Of a stretch of DNA of 64,000 bases, positions 41,532 to 64,000 are shown piece after piece. The position numbers and the translations under genes were made by a program. Source of the DNA: Thalia democratica (taxonomy: Eukaryota). The DNA lies in contig OZ241827.1 in NCBI GenBank assembly GCA_965202585.1, positions 63,054,001 to 63,118,000 on the forward strand. Reading direction: 5' to 3'. Within the stretch, counting starts at the first letter, position 1, and the number at the start of each line of letters is the position of its first letter. The notes under the pieces are model-generated. The model worked only from the letters and a program-made list of their open reading frames with translations. It was not told where the DNA came from and made no database searches.

Positions 41532-42871
41532 TTATCTATTCTTTAGAAAATTATTAAGTTTCAATTACATTAGTCATTACTAATCTTACCAAGTTATACT
41601 GAAATTCGATATAAATACTAATTTCAGTAAGCTTTATAGGAAACATGCATCATTTTACTAAGATAATTACCAATTTTAAACACTTCCTCATGTTAAAATT
41701 TGCTTGTGACTTTACATATATATCTATGTTTAAAATTTTATACCATAAATACCTCACTTGCAGTATGTGTATATCAAAATATATAAATAATAGTTTTTTT
41801 AATTTCTAATTTTATAATTAACTATACTTTGTCAGATAGTTATGTGATATGTTGTTATGTTTATTTTATTATAAGATGCATTGTTTGGATTAAAATGCAC
41901 TTTAGTAATTGAGTATGTTGGTACATAAAACTAATTAAAATTTCAATTTTATTCAATTTCATAAACATTTAAAAGTATAAAACCTGTTGTTTACAATTCT
42001 CAGATCTGGAGCTTAAAAATTCTTGACAGCGTATAAAAAAAATATCTTTTTGACATTTGATTAATGTTTTAAACTTAAATTTTTGTTCTTACATTTTTGG
42101 TTCAAGTAACTCAAATCAGAAATGAGCATTTTTTTTTAATTTTTGCAGATTTAATTGACTTTTGCTCATAACTGGTTGCCGTGTTAGACGTAGACTATGT
42201 CGGATACCAACTGTAAGTAAATCTATACTTAAAGTTGCAATAATTATTTGTAAAAACAGTCATAAAATAGTATATGACTTAAAAGAGTTTTCAGAAGTAA
42301 ACAATTTTCAACACTGAGTATTTTATATTTCTAATTTATTATTTATGTTAAAGTTGATATTCTTTCATAGCTAATTTGATTCGAAATGGCAATTACGCAG
42401 CTTAATAATAACTAAATGTTTATCATATTACTATATTTACTTTCATAAAACTTTGACACCAAAGCTTATAAGTTTTACAACCAATTTTACATAAAGTTAA
42501 GTAATGTATTTAAAGTAAATTAATTTACTTGCATTGTTTTAAATGATTATTGATCTTTGTGAATTGAAAAGGTTTAAAAATTAGAACTGAGTAATTTTAA
42601 AAATACTATATAAGAAAAGAAATGTTGGTGCTTATAATTTTTTTTTTTTTTTAATTAGATTTTATTTAATTTAATTTGATAAAAAGGTGATAAAAACTTA
42701 GTAATAAAAGAATGTAAAAACTAAACGTTGAAACGTTCGAACAAGTGATATTTTTTATTAATAAATTATATGATTAGATAACAGTATTAAAATAATTATA
42801 CATATTTATTTAAGTTCTTTCAGTTTTATTAAAAACATCAATCTTACAGAGGTTTTTATAATTTACTGAAA

Positions 42872-44427
42872 ATGAATCCAGTTACGACCATTGACCCGAG
42901 TCAACTTAATGATTATGACGTCAAATGTACGCGGAATTGTGACGACAGCTTGTCACAAAACTCCATGAATCATCGAAACCGACAACCTGATTTAAACTGT
43001 TATGACTACCAACAAGCTTATATGAACCAGGTGCAACCAAATCAGCTTCAAACAGGTCATTACCCGACCAATGCTCAGTTCACAGATCAGATTGTTAACA
43101 ACACTCGAAAAGATGACGGTTGTTTTTTTCAACAGCAATCTTGTGATTCTGAATGGCAAGATTTTAGCTTTCAAAATGATGATCAGTATAGCAGAAAAGA
43201 TACGTCTTTTCAAAATAACGGTCAGTGTGTCAAGCAAGATATGTATCCACAGGACAGTTACAACATTCATGACCAGCAGCTGTATAATCCTTTACAACTT
43301 GATAGCAGTCAACTTATTCGCCAGCAACAAATTTCTACAAATAGTTTTGCAAATCCACAACAACTTGATAGCAGTAAGCTTATTTGCCAGCAATTAATAA
43401 ATACAAATAATTATTATTGTTACGATTCACATAAAAGTTACATGCCAACAGGTATATATTTTTTTGATGACAAACATGTAACTTTTAACAAAAAATAGTT
43501 TTAATATATATGATAGGATATACTAGTGGACGAAGTAACACGGTGGTTCATTCTGCAAATTATTCTACAAATTATGTAAGTAGAAAACACTTGCTAAACT
43601 TTAGTAAATTTAGTCTCAAGTTCAGAGTAATGTTTTTTAAACTTTAAAGATTGTTTTATATTACTTTAAATATCAACTAATCTCTAACACTAAATATTTT
43701 CAGGGATTTCAGAAGCCTATGGAGAGCCAAAATAATTTCTCATCAGTTAGAAAACTTTCTAAGCTAAGAAAGTGAGTTAAATAATTGATTAAAATTTCTT
43801 CTCCCTATTTTTGTTATAAAATACTTAGAAATTTTTAGTAACTTTATAGCATTAAAACTACAGGTCTTTTAAAATGTAAAAACATATAGAAAAAGAATAA
43901 CTATGACCTCCGATCAACTGTATCATATGGAGAATTGTTTTTACAACATAACTGCTTATCCATCAGTGTATAAAGCGAATGAACTTGCACAAATAACTCA
44001 TCTTTCGTTCAAAGAACTCACGGTTAGTGTTATCTCAATAGTTATTAGAATAAATCAGTTGAATTAACTTTCGTTAATTTTGCGTTCTTTCGAAGCACAT
44101 AATCAATTGCAGCTTTTTTTTCTGTATGAAAACTAACTTTGACATATTTCTCTAATTAATATTTGTTTTAAATGTTTTATTATATTACATATTTACTATG
44201 ATGTCTTTGTTTAGAATTTTTTATACTTTTATTTTGTTTCTAGGTAACCGAATTTAACGAGTTTTTGCTGTTCAATGAGTTAATTTACTCTGAAGATTAC
44301 GATGTTAATTTTACTAAGTCTTTATTTTTACCTTATCTGTTATTTAATATCTATACATTTTTTTCAGACCTGGTTTAAGAATAGACGCACAAGAGATCGT
44401 AAACTTGGATTGGAATTAAAAAGATGA
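42872..44427 (+). CDS. Divergent PRD-class K50 homeobox protein, copy A (299 aa)
   Basis: Exons 42872-43451, 43517-43575, 43704-43771, 43890-44022 and 44368-44427; all GT-AG and phase-consistent (900 nt). C-terminal homeodomain LRKKRITMTSDQLYHMENCFYNITAYPSVYKANELAQITHLSFKELT/TWFKNRRTRDRK with R5, L13, F20, W48, F49, K50, N51 and R53, and an intron between codons 46 and 47. Confidence 0.9.
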
Positions 44428-45419
44428 CAATTTAGATATCTAACTTTGTTTTTCGATAATTTATTTTATTTTTTTTTTCGCATAATGAAAAGGTTTACTA
44501 ATGCTTTTAATCTACTGAATGTAGATTAAGGAAATTGCAAACGTGGATTGGAAACTAGAAGATAATGAATATGAATTTAAACATTTTCCTTTAGATAAAT
44601 GTACTATATAAAAACGTACTATTAAACTATACAAGGTATAACAGTTTTAGTAAATAAAGAAAGTGCACTTATGTGTTTGGTTTAATTAATATGAAAGCTT
44701 TGCTAAATCATATCCATTAGCTAATGTTAATCTAACAATAATGTTCGATTACACGTTGTTAAATTAAGCCATTTTAGTGATTTTTTTGACTTTTATTTCT
44801 GTTTATTACCATGTTGATTGGTCTGTTACTGCTAACTTAAAATTGATTGTTTTTGGAATGTAGAAAAACAATATATGCTAAAAAGTATATTTTTTATTAA
44901 ATTATACAGTTGTACTAATGAAAATTGTCAATACGTTTTGTTTCAATAAAACTTTGTTGTTTAAGTTTTATTTATACTATTTTGTTTGATTATAAAATAT
45001 GCAGTTTAATAAATTTTATTTTCCATCAGTTGTAGTCAAATATTACTAATGATAAGAATAAGTAAAAATTTTATATTATTATTTAAGAAAAAAACATCAT
45101 TTACTAATCCTACAATGTTAAAATATTCAACAGTTTTATTACTTATTTTATTTAATTAGTCATTTGGTGTATCAAGACAATAGATTATAATAACTTATTT
45201 AAATTTTAGAAAAAAATTAAAGCTTCTATGAAGATTTTTGTTTTTTAAAATAAATTAAAATATTAACATAGGATAAAAAAGTTTATTAAACAGCAAGTTT
45301 TAAATCAAAATCGGTAGATGTCAAGCTTGATAAAATAAAAAAAAATCAGAGACTCGGGTTACAAATTAAGCAATTCAGACAAAATGAAACATATTGGGCT
45401 GGCTAGCGTTGGTATAATA

Positions 45420-45712
45420 TTAAAAAGCTCGCTATTAACCGGCATTGGCTACGCGTAATTGTGCATAGAGAATAAAAATAAATTATAAAAACAAGTTAAA
45501 AAGCATAGTAAAGCAGAAAATAATACAAACAGATAATAGATAAAAATACAAATAACTAAAACTCCGGTTTCTTAAAGTATTATTTATCCCTATCTTCAAG
45601 TCTTCTGTTTACAAAAGATTTCCATTAGGCTCGGTCATTTGCAAGCAACTCTAACTCATCATATATTATATTCAAGCTCTTTAGATCGCGCTTACATAGG
45701 CGAATATAAACT
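45420..45712 (-). mobile_element. RTE-clade LINE 3' fragment
   Basis: KLVYIRLCKRDLKSLNIIYDELELLANDRA*WKSFVNRRL matches the RTE C-terminal pattern KLRYKDVCKRDLK..I....WE.LA.DR..W. A paralogous copy lies at 62750-63030. Confidence 0.65.
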
Positions 45713-45728
45713 AATTTTATGACAAACT

Positions 45729-47848
45729 TAATTAAATATATCTTTTTTGGTTGAGTTTACTCACAAACTAATTACAAGAATGATAAAGTCTGTAATACAA
45801 AACATAACTAAAATTAGGTAAATACTTCTACATCTCTCCTAAGATTTTATCTACTAAAGAGATAAAACTATAAATTTACCTAGCAAAACAATTTTTTTAT
45901 TAAACAATTTGTTACAACTTAAACACTTTTTTCAGGTCTAAAATTCAACGAAATTTAACTCAAAAAGGCAAAAACATTTCAAAAATTACGATTAACTTAG
46001 TTCACTAATAAATGATTTGTTAAAACAAACTACAACTTAAACAAACAAACTGTAACAAAAAATTTGAGACTTAATTTTTACTTTTCTTCACTCAGTTGCT
46101 GAACACAAGCATTTAAAAACTTAATTGCTTCACCGATTTGAACTTTTCAGCTTTGAAGAACGAAACTACACGTCATTCATCTAACCACCTTGAAACTTCA
46201 CTTATTTTGCTAATAAACATCTTTATCATATTTTCGACTTTAAACAAAGTAGAAGGTGCATTACTGATAGCATTAAACACTGACGAAATACTGCTACACT
46301 TATTTTCCAAATACTCGATACCAACCAACAGTTCGAGTTTTTGAAAGTCAATCTCTGCGTCCTTATCCAAGATTACTTTGAACAGATGGCTGTTAGACTA
46401 GTCTGCTGCAAAGTCAACTAAAAACTTTAGGACGTCACCATTGGACTGAAACTCATTTATTAGACCATATATAAAACAATAATTTACAGTGAATATTCAA
46501 ACTTGACAATAAATGAATATCAGCAACATCGGTGGCACGAAACTTATGAAAATCATCGTAAAGTTTTACACGGAAACGGTGCAAATAATCCGATAATTTC
46601 ACACACTCATCCCGAACACATTGTTGTTCGCAGTAAACTTTGGCTGTCTGTTTGCTCTCTGTAAAAAATATAAGTCAAGAAAATATAGATCGAAGCAAAT
46701 CCGAGCCATTCCAGTTCTGCATCAATTTCGAAGAAAACCATTAGTACAGAAGGAAATTACACAATGCTTCACAAAAAGAATCTTCCTTATATAAAAACTT
46801 AGAACATTAAAACTTTTCTTGACATCTTTTTCTCAACCTTACAGAAAAGACAAACTTTTACAGTGGTATGTTTGCCTTTCTCAGATAAGGGATACTACTT
46901 AGAGAATTGCAAACAGGAGGGGTAAATCTTCTCAGAAACTTACGATTTTGAGCAGTTAAGCGACCTGATCCATCAACTTTGACAACACATTGATGGCAGT
47001 CCTTCACTTCCACCACCACTTCACTATTCCCCCAGTTGCTAGGAAAGTTACCTGTTCGATTTAGTATCACGACATGATCACCGCAATTCAGTGGTGGCAA
47101 CGATTTTGTGTTCTCACTTATATTTTCCAGAGACTTAACAAAACAGATACTGAGAGATTCTTCCTTTTTATTCCAAACGTCACGCCACATTTTTGAGATC
47201 TGCGGGTTATTGTAGGTCATAACACTCTTTCTGACGTAAGGTAATGACTTCTTTAAATTTCGTCGCGATCCAGTGTGTAAAAGTACGTTTTTCTGTCCCT
47301 GTACCTCCTTTTTCTTCTTCGCGTTTTTCCGCTCGAACAAATTTTTTCTACAACCTCGGCTGCAAAGGCCATCACAGTTTTGTGTATACAATCCACCAAC
47401 TAGAAATGCATTTGACTCATCAGCATAATTTTGATGACTTTGATAAACTTTTTTACGGGACTTTATCCAGCATTTTTTAAAGGCAAAACACTCAATATAC
47501 CTCATATTTTTACTGCTCCAAACAAATTTATCAGTTGATTTATTACGTATGCTACAAGTTGTTTTACCACTTGGTTTTTGTGTGGTTTTCCTTAAGGATT
47601 TGCATACATTTGCTGAGTACATTGTTGTGAATGATAAGCAAAGAGGCAACTACAGAAGCATCGACGTCTGGTGTTTCATATGTGCAACTCTCAAGAGGGC
47701 ATTTATCACAGGCATTGTTGATTCAATTCAGCTTGACTTTATCATAAATAAATATATCTTTCTTGGTTGAGTTTATTCACAAACTAATTACAAGAATGAT
47801 AAAGTCTGTAATACAAAACATAACTAAAATTAGGTAAATACTTCTACT
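45729..47848 (-). mobile_element. Older internally deleted Ty3/Gypsy LTR retrotransposon with about 104-bp LTRs
   Basis: Direct repeats 45729-45832 and 47745-47848 (offset 2016, about 4 mismatches), with a PPT-like AGGAGAGA directly before TGTAGAAG of the 3' LTR. The frameshifted gag start MPV(I)..CPLESCTYETPDVDASVVASLLIIHNNV at about 47715 is fused to an integrase C-terminus (WRDVWNKKEESL..LPPLNCGDHVVILNRTGNFPSNW..VVEV...VVKVDGSGRLTAQNRKFLRRF, 47200-46930). No RT is present. The element is absent from the paralogous site near 63030. Confidence 0.75.
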
Positions 47849-47949
47849 AAAAGTTAATATAACTAAATACTAAAAGTTAAAATTTTATTTATTTTAAGAG
47901 ACATAATTACACTGTTTCACCGCAATGTGGATTTTCAAATTGTTAACCT

Positions 47950-48456
47950 TGTGACGATCGCTCGGCCCTTCGGTACTTTCCCTAAACGGAGCCGGCGGTC
48001 GAGACTTCTCTGTTTCGCTAACAACGGGTTCAGGCGCGTTGGCTGACTCAGAGCGAGTAGTCATTTTGGCCAATTTTTTGGCAACTTGTTTGGAATTCAT
48101 ATCGCGCTACTTATCGATTAATATACCGCGAATGAATGGTCAAGTAGTATAAGTTAAAACACCAAAAACGTATAAACACAATTATTTATTAAAAGAACTC
48201 ACAACATAAAATATAAAACACCAAATACACTCTATAATCGTAAGTAAATGAACACAAATATAATATAATACTAAACTAGCAAAAAGTAAACACTGACTTT
48301 TGTCTATTCGTCTATGCGATCAAGAAGCGCATGCGATAAAAAGCATGCGATACAAAAGCGACGTAATCGTTCATGCGTAGTATATATAGTGCTTTAACAA
48401 TCCCTTTTTCCCAATTCTCTCAATTTATAACAGAGCATGTCTGTTAGACTGCTACA
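47950..48456 (-). repeat. 3' LTR
   Basis: Identical to 53226-53732 except 48099 (a) vs 53375 (t). On the minus strand, a TATATATA lies near 48380-48387 and an AATAAA near 48185-48190. Confidence 0.95.
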
Positions 48457-51166
48457 CTCCGTCTAGCCCGAAGAAGAAATGACTGTGGAGGCTTAGGGAT
48501 TTCAATAACGCATTTTCCGTGCGCTCCCCTTCCCCCACTCCAGTCATTTTTTTTTGAATTAAATGAGAGTATGGAAATTGTAAGGATGTTATTATCACTT
48601 ATACCACGAAATTCGATTACGTGCAATACTAAACAAGTTTTTAATACACAAAGCATAAAGCTTAAAATAACGTTGATGTAGTGTTTACTTGTAATGTAAG
48701 CTAAAAGAAAAAATTGTATGTACGAAAAAATTTGATGTAATTTAAAAGCGACAAAACATAAAAAATAAATACGAAGAAGTAAAAACTTAACGCTTAAGAT
48801 TCCTTCTTTTAGAAAACATGCTAATAATTTGTTGATATTGTAAAGTATGCAACAATACTTAAAAAAATGACAATGTAAATCAAAAGTAGCAATTAGCAAT
48901 ATCACACTAATACTTAATAAAACATATCAAAGAAGTTTTCACTCTTTTGTTTTATAATTTCATTTTTGTTTTTAAGGTATTAAAATTTTGTTTTAGATGT
49001 GCCATAAAATTAAAGAAACAATGATTTGAATTCAAAAAATAAAATATATAATAAAATAAACAAGCTTTAAAATTTTAATTAAAAAATTCAAAAGTTTACA
49101 CAATCCTAGAATTATGTTACTCAATCCCTAAAAAAGTTTACTGTTTGTTGGTTCTTAGCAACTTGAAACAGTTCTATAGTCTGTAGCCAATGTTTTTCTC
49201 CACTTCTCGTTGAGATAAAATGGGTGGTTCCCGCAATGAATATCACAGTTGTAATAAAACAACTAGATGCTAAAACGGTTAAGCATTTCCACTGAGTGGC
49301 TGTGACTGCTAGCGAAGTCTCTTCCACATCGTGATATTCGTGAAACAATGACGTGTCAGCGATTACCAGTGCTTCATCTTTTTTTCACGAATTTTGTACA
49401 GTAAACGTGTGAATCTCCATTTGCAACCAAGTAGGACTCATTGTGACAAATTAGGTCTCCTAAAGACTCTTTATGGCGTCAATACTTCCATCCATTGTGA
49501 TTGTTTATTTAAAAAACATATGTAATATAAAATACAATGTTAAATATAGCGTAAACATTAAAATAGTTTAATAAAATCGTCTAGTTTATTAACTAAACAT
49601 TGTATTTATAATGATATTTACTATTTTCACGTTAACGTAAAATATAAAGTAAGCCCTGATGTCAATCAATAACTGAAAGAATGCTTCAACCGGCCGATAT
49701 AATTTTAAAACAATTAAATCGCAGACTTTTTGTTTTTTGAAAAAACTTAGTTTTATTTTATTTTTATAGTTATTTGAAAATGACAACGATAATTAGCTTT
49801 CAATTTGCTTAACGAGGTATAATGTTTATTTAACAATAGCTATAATCATTGCTACACGTCGTAAAAACCAATCCGCTGAAGCATTCTCGCAATGTTACAA
49901 TTATACAAGAAAAGATGACATTTACGGACAAAAAAGGTTAACGATTTACAACTCATTTCCCTTACTTTGAACTGAAACAGAAAAAAACTCTAACTGGTTT
50001 TTAAAGACCTTAACAATTAAGAAAAGTCATTTGTTACAAAAAAGTTTAAACACTGTGTTTTAGTAAAAAACACTGCTCCTAATTAACTCAGTCAGAATTC
50101 TCATCGATCGCAGTTCAGAATTATTGTTGCATAATTTCACTACAACAATGCAAATTAAATTTTTTGACTTAACTTATTAAGTTTCAAATAGGCTTCATTA
50201 CATATTTCATAGTGCGTTTAAATTTTAATTTTTTTCCTTTAATAAGAAGTAAAACAACAATTGAGAAATAAATTGTCAAAAGAACATATCAGTGTATATA
50301 AAATGTGGGAGTTAAAATCAAAGCAATCGTTCTGCATTAATTTTAAAACAAGTACAGGAAATAAGTTGTTTTGAAACGATAAATCAACAACAACTCCTAT
50401 TTATTTAAGAATATATCAAAAGTAAACATTCGATATTTTAAAACAAAAAATCATATATATACTTGTTTACTTACGTAATAGATTGATCATATACTCCTTA
50501 AACATTACTTGTTTAACAATTTTTATTCTATGTTATTAGTATGAAAATCAAATAATAACAAAATTTGCTAATTCAAGGTAAAGAAGAATTCTTAGTTACT
50601 ACGTTTGAAAATTGTAACAATTTCAAACCTATTTAAAGCTTAATTCTATGTTAAAAAGTGTATCACGAATAAAAAATAACTTATTACGTTTAAACGAAAA
50701 GAAATATAAAAAATACTAATATTTAAGAAAATAGAAAAAAATTAACACAAACAATAAACAAAACTGACATTAATCGAAATTAATTTTTAAACTTTGCAAG
50801 CATTTTAAACGAAAACAACTAATTTTTAAAGAATGTAGATCAAAATACAAACAAAGAAAATAACAAACATGTATTCAACATTTTCTTAAAACTTGACCCT
50901 TCATTCAAGAAGAAAAAAATATGTTAATTTTGCTAAAAGACTAAACTTGTTAGTAACGCTTCTTTTTATGAAGAAAAACATCAACGCGTGTTTGATAAAT
51001 CGCAAGTTTAAAATACACGACCTTTTAACGTGAGCTTTTTCTTTTTTGCTGCGCAAAGCTAAACAAAAACTAAATTAGTTTTATTGCTAAACGCTAAAAC
51101 TCAAGTGCCGCTGATAATAATTTAATTGCTTTGTAGAATTAGTCATCGCTCGGTTCGTCAGCGTAA

Positions 51167-51826
51167 TTAATCGTGAACTTGTATTTTACGCAACTTATAA
51201 GGTTGGCTTATTTTATTTACTGGCTCATTGTAAATAATGTTTCGCTGCTGATATCGCTTAAGATGACGTATATTTTTAAATGGTTTACTTGTGGACGAAT
51301 TATTGTTTACAAGTAATGAACTTGAATTGTAATTATTTTTAGAAGGATTGATACAATCTGTATTGTCAATAACTTCAGAATTTTGATACGGTTCCTTGGG
51401 ACGTTGTTTTTTTTGCTCGTTATTGACTATATGCGTTTCTGCACTTGTCATATTAACGGATTTTACGGTCGGCACGGGTAGCCTTTCCACAGTCGAAGGC
51501 TGCTTTGTTATGACGTCACAATAGGCTTCTGCGCTATTAACCTCGTTACTATCTTCAACCGGCGCGAAAGACGTCGACTGTTGTTCAGCATCAACCTGAA
51601 CATCATCTGTCTTGCTAAAATTTTCTGACTCTGTTGACTCGTTTCCCGATTTAAAAGAAGTCTTAAGGTTACTAATATCGCCGCTAAGGTGCTTTAACGC
51701 GGTTGATTCTGAGTCGAAATCAGTTTGCTCAGATGTTTTAAACACACAGCCGACTGTCTTAGCAAGAGGTGGCTCTCCCCTCTCCTCCCTACCTCTTACT
51801 GTCGGGAGGAGGGGTGCCCGTTTTTT
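51167..51826 (-). CDS. -1 frame ORF2 fused to Gag by programmed frameshifting; about 217 aa, low complexity, no Pol catalytic motifs
   Basis: The frame opens just upstream of the slippery site and runs KKRAPLLPTVRGREERGEPPLAKTVGCVFKTSEQ...NIRHLKRY...PYKLRKIQVHD*. It is S/T/E/N/K-rich and has no DS/TG protease, YxDD or D,D35E motif. Confidence 0.6.
   Translation of the reverse strand, partial: KKRAPLLPTVRGREERGEPPLAKTVGCVFKTSEQTDFDSESTALKHLSGDISNLKTSFKSGNESTESENFSKTDDVQVDAEQQSTSFAPVEDSNEVNSAEAYCDVITKQPSTVERLPVPTVKSVNMTSAETHIVNNEQKKQRPKEPYQNSEVIDNTDCINPSKNNYNSSSLLVNNNSSTSKPFKNIRHLKRYQQRNIIYNEPVNKISQPYKLRKIQVHD
51761..51826 (-). promoter_or_regulatory. -1 programmed ribosomal frameshift signal (slippery heptamer plus H-type pseudoknot)
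   Basis: A_AAA_AAC in the Gag frame (51826-51820), then a 5-nt spacer. Stem 1 is CCCCUCCUCCC (51814-51804) paired with GGGAGGAGAGGGG (51789-51777). Loop AGUAAGAGGU (51800-51791) is complementary to downstream ACCUCUUGCU (51770-51761). Confidence 0.8.
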
Positions 51827-53340
51827 TGATTAAAGGGGCCCTGCCGGTTATGAAAATTTTGGTTGTTTGGGGAATGCCCTTGACTATGAAAACTTTGATT
51901 GAATGGAGGCCCTTGACTTTGGAAGTTACTTGGACCTTGGGTATACCCTGAATTATTATATCTATTGTTAACCTGAACGGGGTTCTGGTTAAAAACTTGG
52001 CCGTTTGGTGGCATTATATTCTGATACTGCATGTGGTTCGGCTGAACGTTGCCGAACCCCATGTTATTGTTCGCTACGTTCTGATAGTTTACATTACTGT
52101 CGTAACGCGTGTTTTGATTATTATAATCGTTTTGTTGATCGTATTCAACTTGATTACTTTGATTATGTCTATAAGGGCGACGCGAAGATTGCTGTACATG
52201 CGAATTTTTATTATTATTTTGTTTCTTTTTATAAAAATTCTGCGATCTTTGCTCATAACGAAATTCTTGAGCTTTTTCTAGAATCTCCGAGTGAGATCCA
52301 GAATATATCTGTTCAATTTTCACTAAAAAATCGTCTAATTTAAGCGTAAAAGCTTCTTCAACTTTCTTTTTTAGTTCGATTGGACATATAGCTGACATAA
52401 AATACTTTATCATACTTCCCTTATCAGCTTTAGACAACTTTTCAGCTAGGCACTTATCTGACTGGAAAGACGCCTGCCCTAAGGTACTCTGTTTAAATCG
52501 AAGTATGTGTGGCAAACTAGATTTTTTGCCAATAAGATAAGTTTTTAAATTAGGGTAGTTAAAATGACACTCGCTATTAGTTTCGCGAAAATCAATTATG
52601 TCATCTCGAGGCCAAATATGAATTAATAACTCAAGTTTCTCACGATCGCTATCGATATGAAACGACTTACAGCGCGACTCGAATAATTCGAGTTCCGCGC
52701 GAGGTTCCGAAATATTTCGAAGTTGTCTAAATAACTTCGCATTTTCGATTATCTTACGGCGCAATCGATCTTGTTCAGTTTCAAAACATCGAGCGCCGTT
52801 TTCTAAGTTATAAACATTGTTATTATCTGACAATGATTCTGTCATTAGCGCACGTAACTTGCTTCGTAAAGCGTTCGTGCGACGATTTTCTTTTATTGTC
52901 TTAATCCTTAGCTCTAATTCGCTTAGGCTAAGATTTTCTATATCGTCCTGCCTATTACTAAGGTGCGGACTAACTTGTACAATTTCAGCAGCGTTTCTTT
53001 GATAAATCGAAGAGGGCGAATTTTCTACGCTCGCTGTATACAAATCGTGCGTATTTTGTGGACGCAAAGAGGCGTTATAGTCCCCCTTTGCTTCTGGTAC
53101 GCTATTAATATTTTGTTGGTATGCGGAGGCATCTGTGCTCTGCATACCCGCTTCGCAATTCTGTCTTCTCGATAAGGTTTGCTTTTTGGTTATAAAAACG
53201 GGTTCGGACCCGGGGAGGACGCCACTGTGACGATCGCTCGGCCCTTCGGTACTTTCCCTAAACGGAGCCGGCGGTCGAGACTTCTCTGTTTCGCTAACAA
53301 CGGGTTCAGGCGCGTTGGCTGACTCAGAGCGAGTAGTCAT
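51796..53340 (-). CDS. gag: Gag-like protein (514 aa from the first ATG) with a capsid-like core and an N/Q-rich C-terminus
   Basis: Intact ORF in the gag position. The core ELFESRCKSFHIDSDREKLELLIHIWPRD...YPNLKTYLI...IKYFMSAICPIELKKKV resembles Gypsy capsid helices by eye. There is no CCHC knuckle. The track start at 53349 is a TTG; the first ATG is at 53340. Confidence 0.8.
   Translation of the reverse strand: MTTRSESANAPEPVVSETEKSRPPAPFRESTEGPSDRHSGVLPGSEPVFITKKQTLSRRQNCEAGMQSTDASAYQQNINSVPEAKGDYNASLRPQNTHDLYTASVENSPSSIYQRNAAEIVQVSPHLSNRQDDIENLSLSELELRIKTIKENRRTNALRSKLRALMTESLSDNNNVYNLENGARCFETEQDRLRRKIIENAKLFRQLRNISEPRAELELFESRCKSFHIDSDREKLELLIHIWPRDDIIDFRETNSECHFNYPNLKTYLIGKKSSLPHILRFKQSTLGQASFQSDKCLAEKLSKADKGSMIKYFMSAICPIELKKKVEEAFTLKLDDFLVKIEQIYSGSHSEILEKAQEFRYEQRSQNFYKKKQNNNKNSHVQQSSRRPYRHNQSNQVEYDQQNDYNNQNTRYDSNVNYQNVANNNMGFGNVQPNHMQYQNIMPPNGQVFNQNPVQVNNRYNNSGYTQGPSNFQSQGPPFNQSFHSQGHSPNNQNFHNRQGPFNQKNGHPSSRQ
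53207..53224 (-). promoter_or_regulatory. tRNA primer-binding site
   Basis: TGGCGTCCTCCCCGGGTC begins 1 nt after the 5' LTR and is complementary to a tRNA 3' end ...GAGGACGCCA. The isotype was not assigned. Confidence 0.75.
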
Positions 53341-53732
53341 TTTGGCCAATTTTTTGGCAACTTGTTTGGAATTCTTATCGCGCTACTTATCGATTAATAT
53401 ACCGCGAATGAATGGTCAAGTAGTATAAGTTAAAACACCAAAAACGTATAAACACAATTATTTATTAAAAGAACTCACAACATAAAATATAAAACACCAA
53501 ATACACTCTATAATCGTAAGTAAATGAACACAAATATAATATAATACTAAACTAGCAAAAAGTAAACACTGACTTTTGTCTATTCGTCTATGCGATCAAG
53601 AAGCGCATGCGATAAAAAGCATGCGATACAAAAGCGACGTAATCGTTCATGCGTAGTATATATAGTGCTTTAACAATCCCTTTTTCCCAATTCTCTCAAT
53701 TTATAACAGAGCATGTCTGTTAGACTGCTACA
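53226..53732 (-). repeat. 5' LTR
   Basis: 507 bp, TGTAGC...GTCACA on the minus strand. It contains the Gag start codon. Confidence 0.95.
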
Positions 53733-56700
53733 ACCTTATGAAAACATAACCTTTTTATTTGAATAAAAGTTACAGTTTAAAAGTCCGCTTTGCGGTGAAA
53801 CAGTGTAATTATGTTTCTTAAAATTATAAAATTTTAATTTTCAGTCTCCTTTTTGGATAGATTACTCTGTTAAAAATTTAGAGTTAAACTAAAATTTATA
53901 CATAATTAAAATTAAATAATATCACATTTATAATTTTCAAAGTTTAATTCCTAAAATTATTCTAAATTTCATTGAGAATTTAGGTAGTTTAAAATTAGGC
54001 CAACTTTTGCCTTTTTCGAAGTTAAAAACTTTTATAATTTTACCTAAAAGTAAGAACATGTTTAAGTTTTGTTTATTTTTTTTTATTTGATATTTATTTA
54101 GATATCTTATTCACTTTATAAATACTGATAAAAAACTTTTTCTGCTTTTTTACAATTTCAAATGCTATGGAAAAAATAACTACTATTTTCATACAATCTG
54201 CTTTATGAAACTACTTAATTAAATTTTCAAAAATGGCAGAAATTATTTTCTGAACTTACACAGAACTCACAACAAATTAATTTATTGTTTAAATAAGGTT
54301 TAAATTGCAAAAATTTTGTAAGTTTTGTTTATAAGTTTAGTTTAACTTGTTCTATATCATCTAAATGTTTTTCTAGCTTTTATCACAGATAGTCGAAAGA
54401 ATTGCAGTGTCTTAAAGTTACTTTAAAAAAGGTAAATATTGAGATATTTTATTGTTAGTTTCAACATATGAATGAGTTTAAGCATTTTTAAAAGTAATTC
54501 GGTACTAAATTGTGAAGTTTAGAATCTAAGTTTTGAAGTTTGTTTCTACATCTTTTTAGTTCTAGTTCATTTTTTATTACATAGTTTAACCTAACACATG
54601 TCATTATAATTGAAAATAATTCTAGTAATTTTAGCTTGAAATATTTTAAAGTTTTAAAAAAAAAACTGCAGTTTTTATTCTAATTAGTTATTTCTTTTAA
54701 GTAAAAATAAAAAATTTTTGAATGATATAAACAAGGAGCTAAACATTGGTTTAAAATAAAGCAATTATTTTAAACCTTAGTTGCTGAAGGTGTCAAAAAA
54801 AGACGTCAAAAAAAAACCTTTCCTTAAAAAAATAAAAATAGTTTTTATTATCAAATTATAAATTTAATCTATTTTTAATCGTCTATTTTTGATTTAAAAA
54901 GTAAACAGACATTTCAAAATTCAAACATTTTTATATTTTAAAAATAATAAGTAAGGAATTAATTTTATATATCATGCCTATACCATCAGATACTAAACCT
55001 TGTTTAATTTTTTAAGAAATCCTTCTTAAATTTTTCCTCAAACTTAGATAGTAAGACACGTTGCGTAGAACAAATTCAGAACTTTTAACTTTTCGAAAGT
55101 TAGTTTTGGATTAGTACTCTTGATATTTAAAGTTTAAGTAGCAAGTGTTTGAGGCTAGTGGTTCTAGATAAAATATTAAGGTGCAATGTAAAACAATAAA
55201 AATGTATATATTTCACTAAACTTTTTCTTGTTTTTATGCCTAACAAGATTACTTAACCAGTTTTTAACAAAAGTTTATTTTTTGACACGAGTATTCTAAC
55301 TATTAAAGTTTAAGTAGCAATGTTTAAAGGTGTAGAGGTTAAAGGTTATTAATTGTAAAATATTAAGGTATAATGAAATCAAAGTAAAATAAATGTCAAT
55401 TTTTCACTATTGTTGTTCTTGTTTATATATTTTTTAAGCTTCATAATTAATTTTCAGTATAAGTTAAACAAAAAAACCATGCTTTGAAAAACTAGCTCTA
55501 TTTTATCGTACCAAAACAAAACATAATTTTAGTAAAAAAACTTTCAATGTTTTAATAGTTTTATTTAATATTTTTTTTAAACTAAACAATTCACTGACTT
55601 TTGTCTTACTCAGTACGTCGTTTAGATAAAGATCTAGAAGACATACATCTGAAACTTTAATCCATTAACATCTTAATTAAACTTAAAACATTACCTTATA
55701 AAAACAGCTATTACACTGAGAATAGATAATTGAAAAGAAAGCTCTGAGATTCAATATAAAAAGACGAGGTAAAGTAAGTATAACTGTACGCGGAAAAAAA
55801 GGAGAAACTTTTTTTTTGTAAATTATTTGAAAGTACATAAATAAAATATATGTTTTTTAAATTTAAAACGCCCGACATAAAAAAGTATTTTTTTTCATTT
55901 AATATTCACTTTTGTAAAACAAACGTTAATTTCAATAAAAATTTGAATGAATATTTTATCTGAACTTATATAAATTACTTTTTGTTTTATTTATATGTTT
56001 TTTTAAACTGAAGAACTTGATATCGAAGATGTAAAATTTACGAAATGTTTAAAGCTCTGGTAAAGTCTAAAAAAAACCATCAAAAATAGTTAATTTACTT
56101 GTGATTATTGGGAAAACATAAAAAAGTTGTAAAGTAACAAACTTTATAAAGCTTTTGGTGTAGACTTATTTATATTGGCTTTATTATGTAGCCCTCTGTA
56201 TATTTGGTAGTTACATTTGTATTAAATATAGTATTTTCATAGTTTTTTTAGTGTATAATTTACCATTATGTAATGGAGTAATACTAATTTATGTGAACAA
56301 TAATTTAAGTAAAATCATACCAATGTATTTAAAGACTTGTTTTTGAGTCTGGTGGGCTAGTTAATTTTTAAAATTGCTTTAACTGAAATGTAAGCTTACT
56401 TATCTATAAAAGTGAATTTTTTGGTAATATATATTTCATGTAAAGCTAAAGTAATATATTGCAAAACAAGTTCACTAAAGTTAATGCAAATTAACTACAT
56501 TTCACAAAATATATGTATTACATCTATTAATGACGATTAAACAGCTACTTTGTTTGTAAGCTACTTATGTTTTAGTTATAAGTTACAAATATGTTTTTTT
56601 ATTTCATAAACAAAAATAAAAGATTAAACTATTTAATAATAAGTCAAAGTTTAATTAACATATCACATGCTTTTAAAAATACTAACTAAAAAATCTAAAC

Positions 56701-57670
56701 AATATACATAAAATATATGTTTATATTCTTTTGCCTTTTAATAATAATCAAGCCAAGTAAACGTTATAGATATTTTAATGTTTACAATAATCGATATATG
56801 TGTAATTTTAAGCATTTTCAGATACAATTTTTTAACATTATTTATTTTATATTTAGCTTCAGTGAAGAGATACATGATCATAAACAGAGATAAATAAATA
56901 AATGTTTCAGTTTTTCTTGACATTAAAACTCAATAAAAAGTATTTAGTTTTATAAACAACTTTTATAAGATACACAATTTATTTTGCTTAAGTAACTAAA
57001 CAAACACAGTACTTACCAGTATAATAGTGTAATCTATATTTTAAACTTTAGTAAGAACAATATATTAAACTTTATAAACACAAAACACTTTAATACTTTA
57101 TTTGGGTCAATAACTAAATAATGTTGTGAATTTTTAGAAGGTAGGTTTGCAAGCAAAAACAAATATTATAGTACGTTCAAATCATCTTTGAGAAAATTAT
57201 TAAGTTACTATTTCATCAGTTTAAGTAATCTTATAAAGTAGTACATACTGAAAAATGATATAAATACTAATTTTAATAAGCTTCAGAAAAAAAAATGCTT
57301 ATTTTTACTAAGATAATTACTAATTTTAAGCACTTCTTTATGCTTAAACTTCCTTATGACTACTATATATATATAGATATATATAGCTATATTTGAAATT
57401 AACTATATCATAAATATCTTACTTGAAGTATGTGTATATCAAAAGATATTAATAATAGTTTTTTTTTTCTTTTATAGTTGAGTATATGTTGCAACTTTTT
57501 CTTAGTTTAGAAGACTTTGTTTAGCCTTAAAAATGCTTTAACAATTGAATCTGTTAGTACATAAAACGAATTCCAATTTCAGTAGGCTTCATTAAAAAAC
57601 ATGCATCGTTTTACTAAGATAATTACTAATTTTAAGCACTTCCTTGAGTTAAAATTTCCTTTTGACTTAA

Positions 57671-57674
<4 letters not shown>

Positions 57675-57714
<40 letters not shown>
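57675..57714. repeat. (AT)20 microsatellite
   Basis: Direct reading. The paralogous positions (about 40105, 41717 and 57363) carry only short AT runs. Confidence 0.95.
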
Positions 57715-57718
<4 letters not shown>

Positions 57719-59990
57719 CGAGCAATGTTTAAAAAAGCTATGTCGTAAATACCTCACTTGAGGTATGTCAAATGAGTATATCGAAAAATATTAATACTAG
57801 TTTTATTGTTGATTCTTTAGGTTATTTATTTGTTGGCAGATAGTTTATGAGATATGTTTTAATGTTTGTCTTAGTTTCAGATGCCATGTTTAGATTGAAA
57901 TGTACTTTAACAATTGAATCTGTAAGTAATAATAACTAATTCCAATTTAGTTTTTCTCGATTTAAGTAAAAACAAAAGTGTATAAAACCTGTCGTTCGCA
58001 ATTCTTAGATTTAGTGCTTCAAAATTGTTAATAGTCTACAGTTATTAGAACTTTATTGGTTACTACAACTTTATTTTAGCATTAATAAATTTACTCTTTT
58101 TATGTATGGTTCAAAAACTATAGCAGTACAAATATATCTATTGAATTGAAATAACTTTAAACAGTCATTTGGACTGAAATACTTAAAAGCATTATTCCAG
58201 ATACCTCTCTATATATGATGTCATAAAGAAAATCCAACTAACTAAAACATCAACATCATTTGACTCGTATATATACGAGCTTTGTTGAATTACACATTGA
58301 ACGAATAAGTTATTAACTGCAAAAAATAATTGTCAACTGATAACCCCCCCCCCTTATTTTGCTACAAAATATTTGTATTGTAAATATTTTTACACTCTTC
58401 TAAAACATTTTCTGAGGCAGTGGTCGTCAAGCTGATAAAATTCTGTGCACACTAAACTGCAAGAATAAATTTTGAGTTTTCTAAACTACGCCGCAAGTGG
58501 TAGGAACACGTAATCAACTTATATTTCTATACAAGGATACTGCAGAAATTTCTGCGCTTTGTTGTTAGAATCTAGCTAGTTTGTTTTAAAAACAAATTTA
58601 CTCAAAGTTACGGACTTCTTTATGTTCTTAATAAAAGTTGTTTCATTAATCTTGTTTTTACTACAATATTATTATTTGTATTGCTCAATACTTACTTTAA
58701 GAGTCACATAGAAAATGATCATTCTTAAAATACTTACAGAATTTAAGTGGAATTCGTTCCGCGAGAGGTAAAACTCACATTATATATTCTAGAAATTAAA
58801 ATGTGTATGAAAAAGATATAAACAAAAGTTTTTCTTATTTAATTTTTTTTGCTATTTATATGTTGTAACTTCTTTAAGTTTAAGATATTTTGTTTGGTTT
58901 AAAAAATACTTAAACAATTGCGTCTCTTAGTACATAAAACTATTTCAAATTTAATTTTTATTGAAATTAGTAAACATTAAAGTGTATAAAACCTGTTGTT
59001 TACATATCTCAGATCTAGAGCCTAAAAAAATCTTAACAGTGTAAAAAAGGTATATCTTTATCACTTAATGAATATATTGTGGTTAATTTTCTTTTAATAT
59101 TTTTGTTTAAAGTGACGCAAATCATAGGTGAGCAAGTTATTTTGTATTAGTGCAGATTCGAACAACTTTTGTTGATAAATGGTCGCAGTTTTAGTCGTGG
59201 GCTACGTCAGAACACTGTTTTTATTTAAATGTATAGTTAAAATATCAATATTTAATTCACAATAGTGGTTATAAATGAAGATTACGACTTTCATTAGTTT
59301 CCAGAAGTAAGTATTTCTCAAAACTCAGAAACTAATAATTTTTCTCGTATATTTAAATATAAAGTTATTACCCTTTAATAGCTTTTAGAGCCAAACAAAT
59401 TTGAAATGGGAACTCTGCAGATTAGTAATAACTAAAAGTTTATCATATTAGTATTTATACTTGATTTCATGAATTTTGATACCAAATCTTAGTAGTCTTT
59501 CATTCTTAGTTTTAGCTTGTTTGCTTGTTTTTGTTCAATATACCAAGTAAATTTTTGCAACTAAGTTTACTTGAGATTAAGTAATGTATTTCAAACAATT
59601 TAATCCATTTTCATTATTTTTAATGATTATTGCTATTTGTAATTGAAAAAGTATTAGAATTAGAACTGAATAGTTTTGAAAATATTCAATAAGAAAAGAT
59701 ATATTTTTGCTTACAAAGTTTGTAATTAAATTTCTTTTAAGTGAATTTTATTTAATTTAACTTGATTAAAAAGTGTATATTATTTAGATAAAGAAAATAG
59801 TAAAAGCTCAACCTAAAAACATCTCAACAAAATAATATGCAACTTTAATGATATTTTTTAATAATACAAATATATGATAAGATCACAGCATCAAATTATT
59901 TAGTACATATTTAATCATTTTTTCTCACTAGTTAAGAGGTATAACGTAAACAAAGTTGATTCTACAGTCTATTTTAAAGTTTACTGAAAA

Positions 59991-61932
59991 ATGAACTTTA
60001 CAAATTCTACAAATCCAAAAACTCATCAAGATGCACAACAAACTGATCCACTTGTGATCATTGATCCGAGTCAACTTTATGATTATGACGTCATATGTAA
60101 GCGGAATTGTGACGTAAGCTCGTCAAAAAACTCAATGAAGCACCAAAACCATTTAGTTATAAATCAAAGGCATCCTGATTTAAATTTTTACGACCATCAG
60201 CAAGCTTATATGGACCAGATGCCACCAAGTCAGCTTCAAACAGGTCATTACTCGACCAATGCTCAGTTCACAGATCATATTATTAACAATAAAGCTGATG
60301 GTCGTTCAGAATATCAACAACCATCGTATGATTCTGGAAGGCAAGAATTTTGCTTTCAAAATGATGATCAGTATAGCAAGAATGATACTTCTTTTCAAAA
60401 TAACGGTCAGTGTGTCAGTCAAGATATAAATCCCCAGGACAACTACAACATTCATGACCAGCAGCAACACTTTGAAAACCCACAACAACTTGATAGCAGT
60501 AAACTTATTAGGCAACAACAATACTACACAAACAGTTTATCAAATCCACAACAACTTAATAGCAGTAAGCTTAAATACCAGCGACAAAAATCTACAAGTG
60601 GTTTTGCAAATCCACAACAACTAGATAGCAGTAAGATTAACTACAAGCGACAAACTTCTAAAAACAATTTTGCAAATCCACAACAACTCGATAGCAGTAA
60701 ACTTATTCGTCAGCAACTAAGTTCTACAAATAATTTTTCAAACCGAACTTCTACAAATACTTCTGCAAATCCACAACAACTTGATAGCAGTAAACTTATG
60801 CGCAAGCAACTAAGTTCTACAAAGAATTTTTCAAACCAAACTTCTACAAACAGTTCTGCAAATCCACAACAACTTGATAGTAGTAAACTTCTGCGCCAGC
60901 AAAAATTTTCACCGAGTAAGTATGATTGTTACCAGGCACAAGAAAATTACATGCCGACGGGTAAGTGTTTATTGTTTTTTGCAAATGATAAACATTAACT
61001 TTTAGAATGAATATAATTTTAAAATTTATGACAGGATATACTAATGGACAGTGTAATACAGCAGTTCATTCTACAGATTATGTGAGTAGAAAGTAATTTT
61101 TAAACTTTAGTATATTTAGTCGCAAATTCAGATTTTTTTTAAGTTAAATATTAAATTTTGTTTTATTACACTTTGTATTTTAAGTAATCTCTAAAACATA
61201 AATTTTACAGCGACTTCAAAAGCATATGGAAAATCAAAATAACTTTCCATTAGTTAGAAAACTTTCTAAGCCAAGAAAGTGAGTTATTCTAATGATTAAC
61301 ATTTCTTATTATTATTTTCGTTACTGTATACTTCAAATTTTTTGTCACTTGAAAGCATTATAACTACCGTTCTACAAAAATAAAATTAAAAACCTATTTT
61401 ATAGAAAAAGAATAACTATGACGTTCGATCAACTGTATCATATGGAGAATTGTTTTTACAACATAACTGCTTATCCATCGGTGTATAAAGCGAATGAACT
61501 TGCACAAATAACTCATCTTACATTTAAAGAACTCACGGTTAGTATTATAAGAATAGTTTATGAGAACAAACCTGTACAATACACTTTCCTTAAGTTTACG
61601 TTCTTTCGAAGCAAGTTATCAAGTGCAATATTTTTCTGTATGAAAACTAACTTTTACTTAATTTCTATTTAATACTTTTTAAAATATTTTATTTTATTAA
61701 ATAATTATTATGATGCCTTTGTTTAGATTTTTTCATACTATATTTTGTTTCCTACTAACCGATTTTCATAAATTAATTACTCGAAGTATTTTGATATTAA
61801 ACTTACTTATCTTTTATTGTAACCTTAAATGTTATTAGATATTAACGTGTTTAGAGAGTTTTATTTTTTCAGACCTGGTTTAAGAATAGACGCACAAGAG
61901 ATCGTAAACTTGGATTGGAATTAAAAAGATGA
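59991..61932 (+). CDS. Divergent PRD-class K50 homeobox protein, copy B (425 aa)
   Basis: Exons 59991-60960, 61035-61081, 61211-61278, 61405-61537 and 61873-61932; all GT-AG with the same phases as copy A (1278 nt). Homeodomain PRKKRITMTFDQLYHMENCFYNITAYPSVYKANELAQITHLTFKELT/TWFKNRRTRDRK. Confidence 0.9.
60477..60900 (+). repeat. Coding tandem repeat NPQQLDSSKL x6 (units of 22, 22, 22, 31 and 31 aa)
   Basis: aatccacaacaact(t/a/c)gatagcagtaa recurs six times in exon 1 of copy B. Only two units are present in copy A (about 43285-43400). Confidence 0.9.
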
Positions 61933-62749
61933 AAAACTGGATTTTTAATTTTGTTTTTTGATATTTAATTTTTATTATAGCATGTTTAAAAAGTGTAGTA
62001 ATGTTTTTAATCTACTTATTGTAGATTAAAAGATTGCAAAGATGGATTTGAGCTAAAAGATAATAATTATAAATCTTGATATTTTCATTTCTTTAGACAT
62101 ACTATATGAAAAAACATTAAAAAGTTATACAAGCTATAACAGTTTCACCAAATTAAGAAAGTGTACTTATGTGTTTTGCTAAAATTAAATGGAAGCTATG
62201 CCTTATTATATTTATAAACTAATGTTATGTAAACGATAGAGTTCAATTATACAATTTTTTAATAAAGCCATTTTGATTGTATTCTAAAAAATAGTTTTGT
62301 TACTTATTTTGTTGATTAATTGTCTACTTTTGGGTTCAATTTGATAATTTTTTGAATGTAGTTAAACAAGTATATGTCTAGTTTTTTGTTTCTTATTGCA
62401 ATTGTAAAGTTGTTTTAATGAAAATTTTAAAAATGTATTTGCTTTGAATAAAACTTTGCTGCTTCATGTTTTATTTAAACTAATTTGTTTGATTAAAAAA
62501 AAAGTTTATTAAATTTTGTTTTCATCACTTGTTTTCAAAGGTTTCTAAAGAGAAAAATATCTAAAAGTTTGAAGAATCACAAATATTTGATTAATTTTAT
62601 AAGGTTAAAATATTGAAGAGATTTTTTTATAATCTACCTTAGTAGTTGTCACACTTCTAAAAATTTTTTTCAACAATCACAGACTAAGGTTATAAATTAA
62701 GCAATTGAGTCAAAATAACACAAAATAGGCTAGCACAGAATTAAAAGAA

Positions 62750-63030
62750 AAAGCCCTCTATCAGCCGGGATAGACTATGCGTAATTGTGCAAAGAGAATA
62801 AAAATAAATGATAGTAGTAAATTAAAAAGCAAAGTGATGCAGTTAATAAAACAAACAGATAATAGATTTGTTTTCCTTCGGTTTCTATAAATTTTTTTCA
62901 TTCCGTTCTTCAAGTCTTCTGTGTACAATAGATCTTTTTTTGGTCCGGTCATTCGCTAGCAACTATAACTCATCAGATTTATATTCAAGCTCTTCAGGTC
63001 GCACTTGCATAAACGGATAATGACTGATTT
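62750..63030 (-). mobile_element. RTE-clade LINE 3' fragment, paralog of 45420-45712
   Basis: RLCKCDLKSLNIN(frameshift)DEL*LLANDRTKKRSIVHRRLEE, in the same position relative to the homeobox gene. Confidence 0.6.
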
Positions 63031-63065
63031 TATGACTATATAGAAATTAAAACTTTATTGATTTA

Positions 63066-63175
63066 GTAAACACAACTACACTTTTCACCGCAAATCGGAT
63101 TTTCAAATTGTAAACATTACTAAGACATAATCTTTTTATATTTAAATAAGAATTACAAATTAAAAGCCTGGTTTG
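63066..63175. repeat. Imperfect hairpin (about 45-bp arms); empty paralogous site of the young LTR insertion
   Basis: aaacacaactacacttttcaccgcaaa ... tttgcgttgaaatagtgtagttgtgtt. Homologous to 47891-47949 joined to 53737-53824. Confidence 0.7.
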
Positions 63176-64000
63176 CGTTGAAATAGTGTAGTTGTGTTCT
63201 TAAATCATAAAATTTAATTACAATATCGTTTTCGGACATATTACTCTGTTAAAATTGTTTTTAATTTATAGTTAAACTAAAATTTATACATAGTTCAATA
63301 GATATAAATTCCTTTTATTTTTTTAATAAAAGATTCTAAATGAATTTAAGAAGTTAGGTAGATTAAATTTAGGCCAATTTTTTATTTTTTTTGGATGTTA
63401 AAAAAATCTTCCACAATTTTATTTATAAGTTTAAATTTAAACCATTTTAAAAACTTATGATTTTTTTTTTTGCTTGTTACAATTTCAAATAACATTAGAA
63501 ACACAACTAATACTTTCATACACACTATTTACTTTACTTTTTTTAAGGCAAAAATTGTTTACTAAACGTTCACTAAATTTATATTTAGTGTATTTAATAT
63601 TTAAATAGAATTTAAATCGCAACAATTTTGTAAGTTTTTGTAAACTAAATTGTTCGGATCTTCGATGTATGTTTAACTTGACTCGTTATACATCATTTGG
63701 ATATATTTTCTGGCCTTTATTTACACCTAGTTACAAGAATAATAGTCTAAACATTTATTACAAGCTATTTTTTTTTTATAATTTGTGGTCAATCTCGTTT
63801 TGTTAGCTATCATTTCATATTGACTTTATTAATTGTTTTTAAGAATGAAGGGTTTTTTTGAATGAAAATTTTTAAAAACTGTAAATACTAATTGTCAATA
63901 CTAAGTTTTAAACTCTGTAACTAACTACAGTTAACTAGGTTCGAAAATATATATATGATAAAACAAAACTTAGGTATTGATTGTAACCACTTTATTAAAA

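Follow-up and report, generated by a model that had tools for sequence, protein, structure and literature searches.

The stretch of DNA considered here, called the window throughout, comprises 64,000 nucleotides (64 kb) of the Thalia democratica genome (assembly GCA_965202585.1, contig OZ241827.1, forward-strand positions 63,054,001 to 63,118,000), with positions numbered from its first letter. The window has no gaps and is strongly AT-rich, its GC content (the share of G and C) ranging from 20 to 36% per 2 kb, and it returned neither tRNA nor Rfam matches. In its six-frame translation the peptide WFKNRR, which contains the lysine at homeodomain position 50 (Lys50, K50), occurs exactly twice, both times on the + strand; the two occurrences mark the last exons of two homeobox genes, referred to here as A and B (Table 1).

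Both genes are intact. Their models contain no internal stops, all eight introns run from GT to AG with pyrimidine-rich acceptors, and the intron phases (1, 0, 2, 0) are alike in A and B. The context of the start codon is common to gene A, gene B and a metagenome homolog (P0001). An earlier note on this DNA had placed two intact five-exon genes at the same coordinates, and the intron borders, phases and open frames bear it out. It had also described the genes as invisible among the open reading frames (ORFs); this is true of the homeodomain exons, which are hidden, and not of the first exons, which appear in the ORF listing as plain ORFs of 208 amino acids (aa) in A and 335 aa in B.

Table 1. 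Features of the window. Positions count from the first letter of the window; nt, nucleotides; CDS, coding sequence; LTR, long terminal repeat.
Feature	Positions	Strand	Details
Gene A, CDS	42872-44427	+	5 exons, 900 nt, 299 aa
Gene A, exon 1	42872-43451	+	
Gene A, exon 2	43517-43575	+	
Gene A, exon 3	43704-43771	+	
Gene A, exon 4	43890-44022	+	homeodomain positions 3-46: N-terminal arm, helix 1, loop 1 with extra residue, helix 2, start of helix 3 (Pfam and PDB alignments)
Gene A, exon 5	44368-44427	+	homeodomain positions 47-60 (T47, W48, F49, K50, N51, R53, T54), five tail residues, stop
Gene A, WFKNRR	44371-44388	+	
Gene A, NPQQLDSSKL-type repeat	43286-43415	+	two copies
Gene B, CDS	59991-61932	+	5 exons, 1278 nt, 425 aa
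Gene B, exon 1	59991-60960	+	
Gene B, exon 2	61035-61081	+	
Gene B, exon 3	61211-61278	+	
Gene B, exon 4	61405-61537	+	homeodomain positions 3-46
Gene B, exon 5	61873-61932	+	homeodomain positions 47-60, tail, stop
Gene B, WFKNRR	61876-61893	+	
Gene B, in-frame tandem repeats in exon 1	60471-60902	+	periods 66 and 93 nt, six NPQQLDSSKL-type copies (Tandem Repeats Finder, motif count, self-alignment)
Duplicated segment 1	39348-45723	+	truncated copy, gene A and flanks; collinear with segment 2 at 67-79% identity (self-blastn)
Duplicated segment 2	56676-63036	+	gene B and flanks (self-blastn)
Truncated third copy (pseudogene fragment)	40970-41532	+	5' flank (~360 nt) and start of exon 1 (~190 nt)
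LTR retroelement in A-B spacer	47950-53732	-	5.8 kb; 507-bp LTRs 99.8% identical (one mismatch), TG...CA ends
GC-richer stretch left of LTR element	46000-47950		
ORF in GC-richer stretch	46858-47649	-	263 aa
Kelch-repeat ORF	37096-37992	+	single exon; Kelch_1, E 4.9e-17
Ubiquitin-family match	1856-2092	+	E 1.6e-14
Ubiquitin-family match	3896-4081	+	E 1.3e-7
C2H2 zinc fingers	17427-17720	-	TGEKP-type linkers
C2H2 zinc fingers	19759-20040	-	TGEKP-type linkers
27-bp tandem repeat	23502-23918		~5 and 2.4 copies, 89-90% matches; open on both strands (138 and 112 aa)
Dispersed ~250-280 bp repeat	8335-8858 vs 24515-25630		both orientations, 72-77% identity

The spliced C-terminal 68 residues match the Pfam Homeodomain profile (PF00046) over its full length (positions 1-57 of 57) at 55.4 bits (cut-off 22.9; E 5.5e-15), with a secondary match to Homeobox_KN at 28.9 bits; the C-terminal domain thus belongs to the homeodomain fold family. 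When the spliced translation is aligned to Paired and Pax3, the core and DNA-contact residues R5, W48, F49, K50, N51 and R53 are present, as is the Y25-P26 pair. Other positions are unusual by Pax3 numbering, namely M8, M16, A31, T47 and T54; the first two stand in place of F8 and L16 and do not vary among 11 family members. The domain is 61 residues long: HMMER opens a one-residue gap in Paired and Pax3 between F20 and Y25-P26, which places the additional residue either where helix 1 ends or within loop 1, and the surrounding motif, C-F-Y-N-I/V-T-A-Y-P, is invariant across the family. In both genes an intron falls exactly between the codons for T46 and T47, with the donor after T46 and the acceptor before T47-W48-F49-K50, and only five residues follow homeodomain position 60. 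An AlphaFold model of exon 4 alone (44 residues, alignment of 11 sequences) reached a pLDDT (predicted local distance difference test) of 78.7 and has three helical segments, in which helix 1 extends through the inserted position and is followed by helix 2 and the start of helix 3. The earlier note had listed WFKNRR with Lys50, an intron between codons 46 and 47, one extra residue between helices 1 and 2, the five unusual residues and a homeodomain at the extreme C-terminus; all were read correctly, and the intron position recurs in the metagenome loci described below.

The region preceding the homeodomain is long and, as had also been claimed, rich in glutamine and asparagine (26% Gln+Asn and 11% Ser in gene A). 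No Pfam domain matched within it, and the model built from a shallow alignment of four sequences has almost no secondary structure (mean pLDDT 38.5). Short motifs are nevertheless kept at 49-70% identity across the four proteins, and both these motifs and the start codon are conserved in two metagenome proteins (P0001 and P0002) at 49% identity. An NPQQLDSSKL-type repeat occurs twice in gene A and six times in gene B, where it lies within in-frame tandem repeats in exon 1. This composition suggests a disordered activation or interaction region that would evolve by gain and loss of repeats.

Genes A and B arose by tandem segmental duplication. Self-comparison by blastn recovers two collinear segments that extend well beyond the genes, and the homology resumes farther downstream, where 53732-54326 matches 63113-63638. 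A truncated third copy abuts the start of unit A; it is 75% identical to 42508-43061 by blastn, is recognized by tblastn at 56-60% identity, and carries an in-frame stop inside the conserved NCD motif. The position of this truncated unit, adjoining unit A, fits the expectation from unequal crossing-over. The two intact genes are 15.5 kb apart because an LTR retroelement and other inserted DNA fill the spacer, so that their present spacing is secondary. The LTR element is young: its two LTRs differ at one site, and it is flanked by a 4-bp target duplication (ACCT), with a TGGCG-type primer-binding site beside the right LTR on the - strand. It is richer than the host DNA in GC, at 30-36%, and in CpG, with an observed/expected ratio of 1.29 against ~0.8. 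The ORFs on its - strand encode 517, 192 and 153 aa, the longest beginning inside the LTR; none matched a Pfam family, and neither a reverse transcriptase nor an integrase turned up among them, so the element is probably non-autonomous. To its left lies a GC-richer stretch with a 263-aa ORF on the - strand that has no convincing Pfam match, and this stretch may be a fragment of another mobile element.

Comparison of A with B indicates where the sequence has been held in place. Identity is 95.5% in exon 4 and 100% in exon 5, as compared with 79-82% in exons 1-3 and 68-78% in the introns. The ratio of nonsynonymous to synonymous divergence (dN/dS) is 0.33 overall, 0.32 before the homeodomain and 0.18 within it, and across ten family loci it falls to ~0.12 in exon 4 at a synonymous divergence (dS) of ~0.54; the homeodomain is under strong purifying selection. 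Between A and B, dS itself is 0.11 in the homeodomain exons, a fourfold drop from the 0.47 of exon 1, while the flanking introns have diverged like other introns. Recent gene conversion was considered as the cause of this low dS and is not favoured, introns 3 and 4 being as diverged as the rest. For A and B, the conserved exon structure, the invariant insertion motif and core methionines, and the low dN/dS rule out chance and decay.

Searches for relatives reached only marine metagenomes. Exon 1 retrieved the two proteins at 49% identity mentioned above, and the homeodomain retrieved nine exon-4 ORFs at 84-98% identity; all come from marine metagenome assemblies in the European Nucleotide Archive (ENA), mostly of the Tara Oceans project PRJEB4352. 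In the contigs concerned (L001-L009), whose GC content is 22-33%, the exons of A and B recur in unchanged order, separated by introns of similar length. Loci L002-L007 and L009 retain the donor site behind codon 46, and exon 5, where present, reads TWFKNRRTR... with a stop five residues past the domain; WFKNRR, and hence K50, was found in A, B, L002, L003 and L004. A count of distinct sequences gives at least 12 members in addition to A and B, present as exon fragments in marine metagenomes, and these may stem from one species or from several. With introns included, the metagenome loci are ~70-82% identical to A and B, much as A is to B, and the downstream flanks of L002 and L003 are alignable over at least 800 nt. 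A tree of the region from exon 2 to intron 4 is star-like, with support for L002+L007 and the near-identical L004/L009 only; A and B are not resolved as sisters. One of the further members, L008 (ENA contig ERZ27291622, positions 743-928 and ~1530-1615), is much more divergent: it keeps a C-Y-Y-N-V-T-A-Y-P motif and the donor after codon 46, and its expected exon-5 region is out of frame and lacks W48, R52 and R53. This locus may be a pseudogene. A scan of JGI metagenome contigs with an exon-4 profile found no relatives, neither protein collection searched (one of them holding 1.84 billion representative proteins) contained an annotated relative, and a full-text literature search for three family peptides returned no paper. 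Look-ups of exact products for gene A exon 1 and for the kelch ORF described below gave nothing, and a Tara contig of 9.3 kb bore no neighbouring gene of informative value. In base composition the window resembles Hydra genomes, whose GC content is 24.7-25.4% (PMC7642931), but the homologs are marine and Hydra itself is not supported.

These results bear on how the earlier note had described the family. Novelty, which it had asserted, agrees with the lack of any annotated relative in either protein collection, and the local expansion it had proposed is evident in the segmental duplication, the truncated copy and the further metagenome members. Its phrase "tandem pair" captures the mode of duplication and misses that the genes are separated by a retroelement and accompanied by a third, truncated copy. 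The term "lineage-specific" holds only in the sense that the members seen come from this genome and from AT-rich contigs of marine metagenomes.

Placement of the domain within a homeodomain class rests on scores against PDB sequences, a profile search and the position of the intron. PRD or PRD-like domains fill the first 19 places among the PDB sequences, with ~43% identity to the top matches. Paired (1fjl) leads at 40.6 bits, with 26 of 60 residues identical, and is followed by Pax3 (3cmy, 38.9 bits), both of which have S50; DUX4 (~37 bits), ALX4 (36.6), Aristaless (33.2), PHOX2B (32.9) and PRRX2 (31.5) also score well. Families with K50 score no higher than those with S50 or Q50: Goosecoid (Gsc), the seventh-best sequence, reaches 36.4 bits, CRX 33.5, ceh-37 29.8, Pitx2 29.6 and OTX2 27.4. 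The first non-PRD sequences, Hox13 and Nanog, enter at the level of Pitx2 (~29 bits), and SIX1 scores 25.4 bits. A profile of helices 1 and 2 run against the 1.84 billion representative proteins gave 12 matches at E<=1e-3, of which six were inspected. Three are fragments of the family itself (P0012, P0013 and the divergent P0015), one is an uninformative protein of 230 aa (P0017), and one (P0023, E 2e-4) is Pax3/7-like, the sole canonical protein among the six; the remaining six matches are short multiple stretches only. No Otx, Gsc, Pitx or Dmbx protein was reached by this profile at E<=1e-3, which for Dmbx, a family with no solved structure, was the only comparison made. The sixth protein inspected (P0016, 584 aa) contains at least six tandem atypical homeodomain-like repeats of the form F-N/D-I-T-K/H-Y-P ... 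W-F-x-x-R-R; it is unrelated to the family of A and B and surfaced only because of its NIT-x-YP motif.

Domains and motifs outside the homeodomain give little further guidance. Pfam searches found no paired (PAX) domain in exon 1 of A or B and no SIX, OAR or TF_Otx (Otx-tail) domain in either gene, and a pattern search found no EH1-like or octapeptide-like patterns. EH1 or octapeptide motifs and OAR are present in many PRD-LIKE families, not in all. An intron between codons 46 and 47 is typical of most PRD-class homeodomains (PMC2959044). The most fitting description of the domain is that of a divergent PRD-LIKE homeodomain with K50, as suggested by its PRD-like best matches together with the 46/47 intron. 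It would appear not to be an ortholog or member of any named family tested, since identity is ~43% and the K50 families score below Paired and Pax3. Affinity to the PRD class and separateness from Otx, Gsc, Pitx and Six had both been put forward in the earlier note; the PDB scores (25-36 bits for these four against 40.6 for Paired), the Pax3/7-like profile match and the intron support them.

We consider, with a probability of roughly 75%, that A and B are functional and belong to a family of PRD-LIKE homeodomain transcription factors that is restricted to one lineage and was amplified recently. Such a family would have grown by tandem segmental duplication, which in the window would have produced the truncated copy, gene A and gene B head to tail before insertion of the LTR element spread them apart. 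Its proteins would combine a long, low-complexity, predicted-disordered N-terminus, with conserved short motifs and a variable number of repeats, and a C-terminal 61-residue homeodomain. In Bicoid, Otx, Gsc and Pitx, Lys50 contacts the two bases 3' of TAAT. By analogy with this biochemistry, the most likely function of A and B would be that of sequence-specific transcription factors preferring TAATCC-type sites, a preference that T47 and T54 may modify.

Several observations weigh against this reading. The splice junctions of A and B are predictions from the DNA sequence, and the disorder of the N-terminus is predicted from an alignment of four sequences only. The signature described for PRD homeodomains at positions 16-26 (PMC2959044) is not seen, the domain having M16, C19, Y21 and an extra residue before Y-P. 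A Foldseek search with the exon-4 model yielded no significant match, a result that is uninformative because the 44-residue fragment is too short. Threonine is unusual at the base-contacting positions 47 and 54, and a preference for TAATCC can therefore not be taken for granted; nor are TAATCC/GGATTA sites enriched in the window, where 17 occur as compared with ~41 expected from base composition, so that there is no hint of autoregulation.

Other origins for the family were weighed against these data. Were A and B to stem from a canonical K50 family (Otx, Gsc, Pitx or Dmbx), as co-orthologs altered to an extreme degree by rapid evolution in their lineage, then K50, the 46/47 intron and the general PRD-like similarity would be expected in common, Goosecoid does stand seventh among the PDB sequences, and the view of the host genome for canonical copies is limited to 64 kb. 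However, Paired, Pax3 and ALX4 score above Gsc, CRX, ceh-37, Pitx2 and OTX2, the one canonical protein among the inspected profile matches is Pax3/7-like, and the missing Otx-tail, OAR and EH1 matches, the many copies and the derived insertion all point away from such an origin, which we regard as quite unlikely. Bicoid, which derives from Hox3, illustrates a further route, in which a K50 homeodomain of another class (SIX/SO being another possible source) would have acquired the 46/47 intron and paired-like residues by convergence. The departure from the PRD signature at positions 16-26, top similarities of only ~43% identity with Hox13 and Nanog close behind, and the secondary Homeobox_KN match lend this idea what weight it has. 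It is nonetheless very unlikely, given that no other class enters the PDB ranking until after the 19 PRD or PRD-like sequences at its head and that Y25-P26, R5 and the intron position agree with a PRD-like domain. TALE homeodomains have three extra residues, whereas the domain of A and B has one. Members of the SIX/SO class have S, T or V at homeodomain position 5 and a SIX domain (PMC4901127), whereas A and B have R5, and no SIX domain was found in them.

The many copies with alignable flanks might also be explained if the homeobox gene were cargo of a large mobile element, and the star-like pattern of loci that are ~70-82% identical across introns and flanks, together with the long alignable downstream flanks of L002 and L003, is what such a history could leave. 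This is highly improbable: the copies in the window are adjacent and head-to-tail, with a truncated unit abutting the next, which is the signature of unequal crossing-over; Pfam detected no transposase, reverse-transcriptase or integrase domain in the units, for whose terminal repeats no specific search was made; and the LTR element, the one clear transposon, was inserted separately and at a later time. Finally, the models might represent decaying pseudogenes or chance assemblies with no expressed product. They are derived from sequence alone, the neighbouring truncated copy is clearly dead, and the exon-5 region of L008 is degenerate; against this stand complete frames of 299 and 425 codons across four canonical introns each, dN/dS of 0.12-0.33 with homeodomain exons far better kept than introns, and the same exon structure and stop position in independent metagenome loci, all of which make the pseudogene explanation extremely improbable.

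A PRD-LIKE family of this kind invites comparison with systems already described. Some members of the mammalian clusters, such as Tprx and Obox, also have K50. The mammalian Rhox, Obox, Dux and ETCHbox (Tprx, Leutx, Argfx, Dprx) genes are likewise paired-like and have low similarity to conserved families (PMC4901127, PMC8208926, PMC4904359), and newly evolving clusters are a recognized feature of PRD-LIKE genes (Rhox, Obox, Dux; PMC4901127). These clusters and the family of A and B alike have multiplied in tandem, leaving remnants of pseudogenes, have diverged quickly in the parts beyond the homeodomain, and are confined to a single lineage; here these traits take the form of a segmental duplication with a truncated copy, dN/dS of 0.32 in the N-terminal part as compared with 0.12-0.18 in the homeodomain, and further members confined to marine metagenomes. 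The mammalian clusters differ in being derivatives of Crx and other genes, with no orthology to A and B, and in having documented germline or preimplantation expression, whereas the present family is known from its DNA. The 61-residue domain at the extreme C-terminus and the repeat-bearing, Gln/Asn/Ser-rich N-terminus also set the latter apart.

With the canonical K50 families Otx/Crx, Goosecoid, Pitx and Dmbx, A and B have in common Lys50, WFKNRR, R5, the 46/47 intron and Y25-P26, and the same TAATCC-type recognition would be expected of both. Unlike these families, they have an extra residue in loop 1, the residues M8, M16, A31, T47 and T54, and many copies, and no EH1/GEH, OAR or Otx-tail match was found in them; the solved domains of Otx2, CRX, Gsc and Pitx2 match at 27-36 bits only, below Paired and Pax3. 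The homeodomains of Paired and Pax3/7 are the best sequence matches, yet A and B differ from them in that no paired domain was found, in having K50 rather than S50 and 61 rather than 60 residues, and in an unrelated N-terminus. One extra residue between helices 1 and 2 is also present in C. elegans UNC-39, which belongs to a different class (SIX/SO); the insertion in A and B is family-wide, invariant and situated in a paired-like domain. One-residue insertions in loop 1 have arisen independently many times (PMC4901127).

Other parts of the window carry features unconnected with the homeobox genes. Upstream of the duplicated segments is a single-exon ORF with kelch repeats, which has 291 homologs at E<=1e-8; among the 120 listed, all are unnamed ENA marine metagenome proteins, 33-75% identical, some with a BACK domain, which points to a very large expansion of kelch genes in the same lineage. 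Two ubiquitin-family matches look like exons of one gene with several divergent ubiquitin-like domains, and two stretches of C2H2 zinc fingers are probably exons of one gene on the - strand. A 27-bp tandem repeat, open on both strands, has no Pfam match, and a dispersed repeat found in both orientations probably represents a small transposable element family.

The family of A and B is a new example of a known phenomenon, the young PRD-LIKE cluster, and not a new mechanism; it leaves the understanding of homeodomain function unchanged and is of moderate interest to homeobox specialists. It also illustrates that annotated protein databases still lack entire transcription-factor families of abundant marine animals, which are visible only as exon-sized ORFs in plankton metagenomes. 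The invariant insertion and the unusual base-contacting residues beside Lys50 make the family a natural experiment on the changes in homeodomain specificity that follow duplication. Multicopy paired-like homeobox genes confined to single lineages have repeatedly been recruited to earliest development and the germline, and by analogy A and B may have an early-embryo or germline role. A bolder and unlikely extension of the analogy is that a large, recently exploded K50 array in an AT-rich marine animal lineage would evolve rapidly and, in many copies, activate the earliest zygotic or germline programme, in the manner of Dux, Obox and ETCHbox in mammals or of Siamois and Dharma in frogs and fish, with the 61-residue domain and T47/T54 giving it a specificity apart from that of Otx, Gsc and Pitx and thereby avoiding interference with them. 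Each independent young paired-like cluster helps to test how general the link to early development and the germline is, and the family of A and B provides a clean example from outside the vertebrates.

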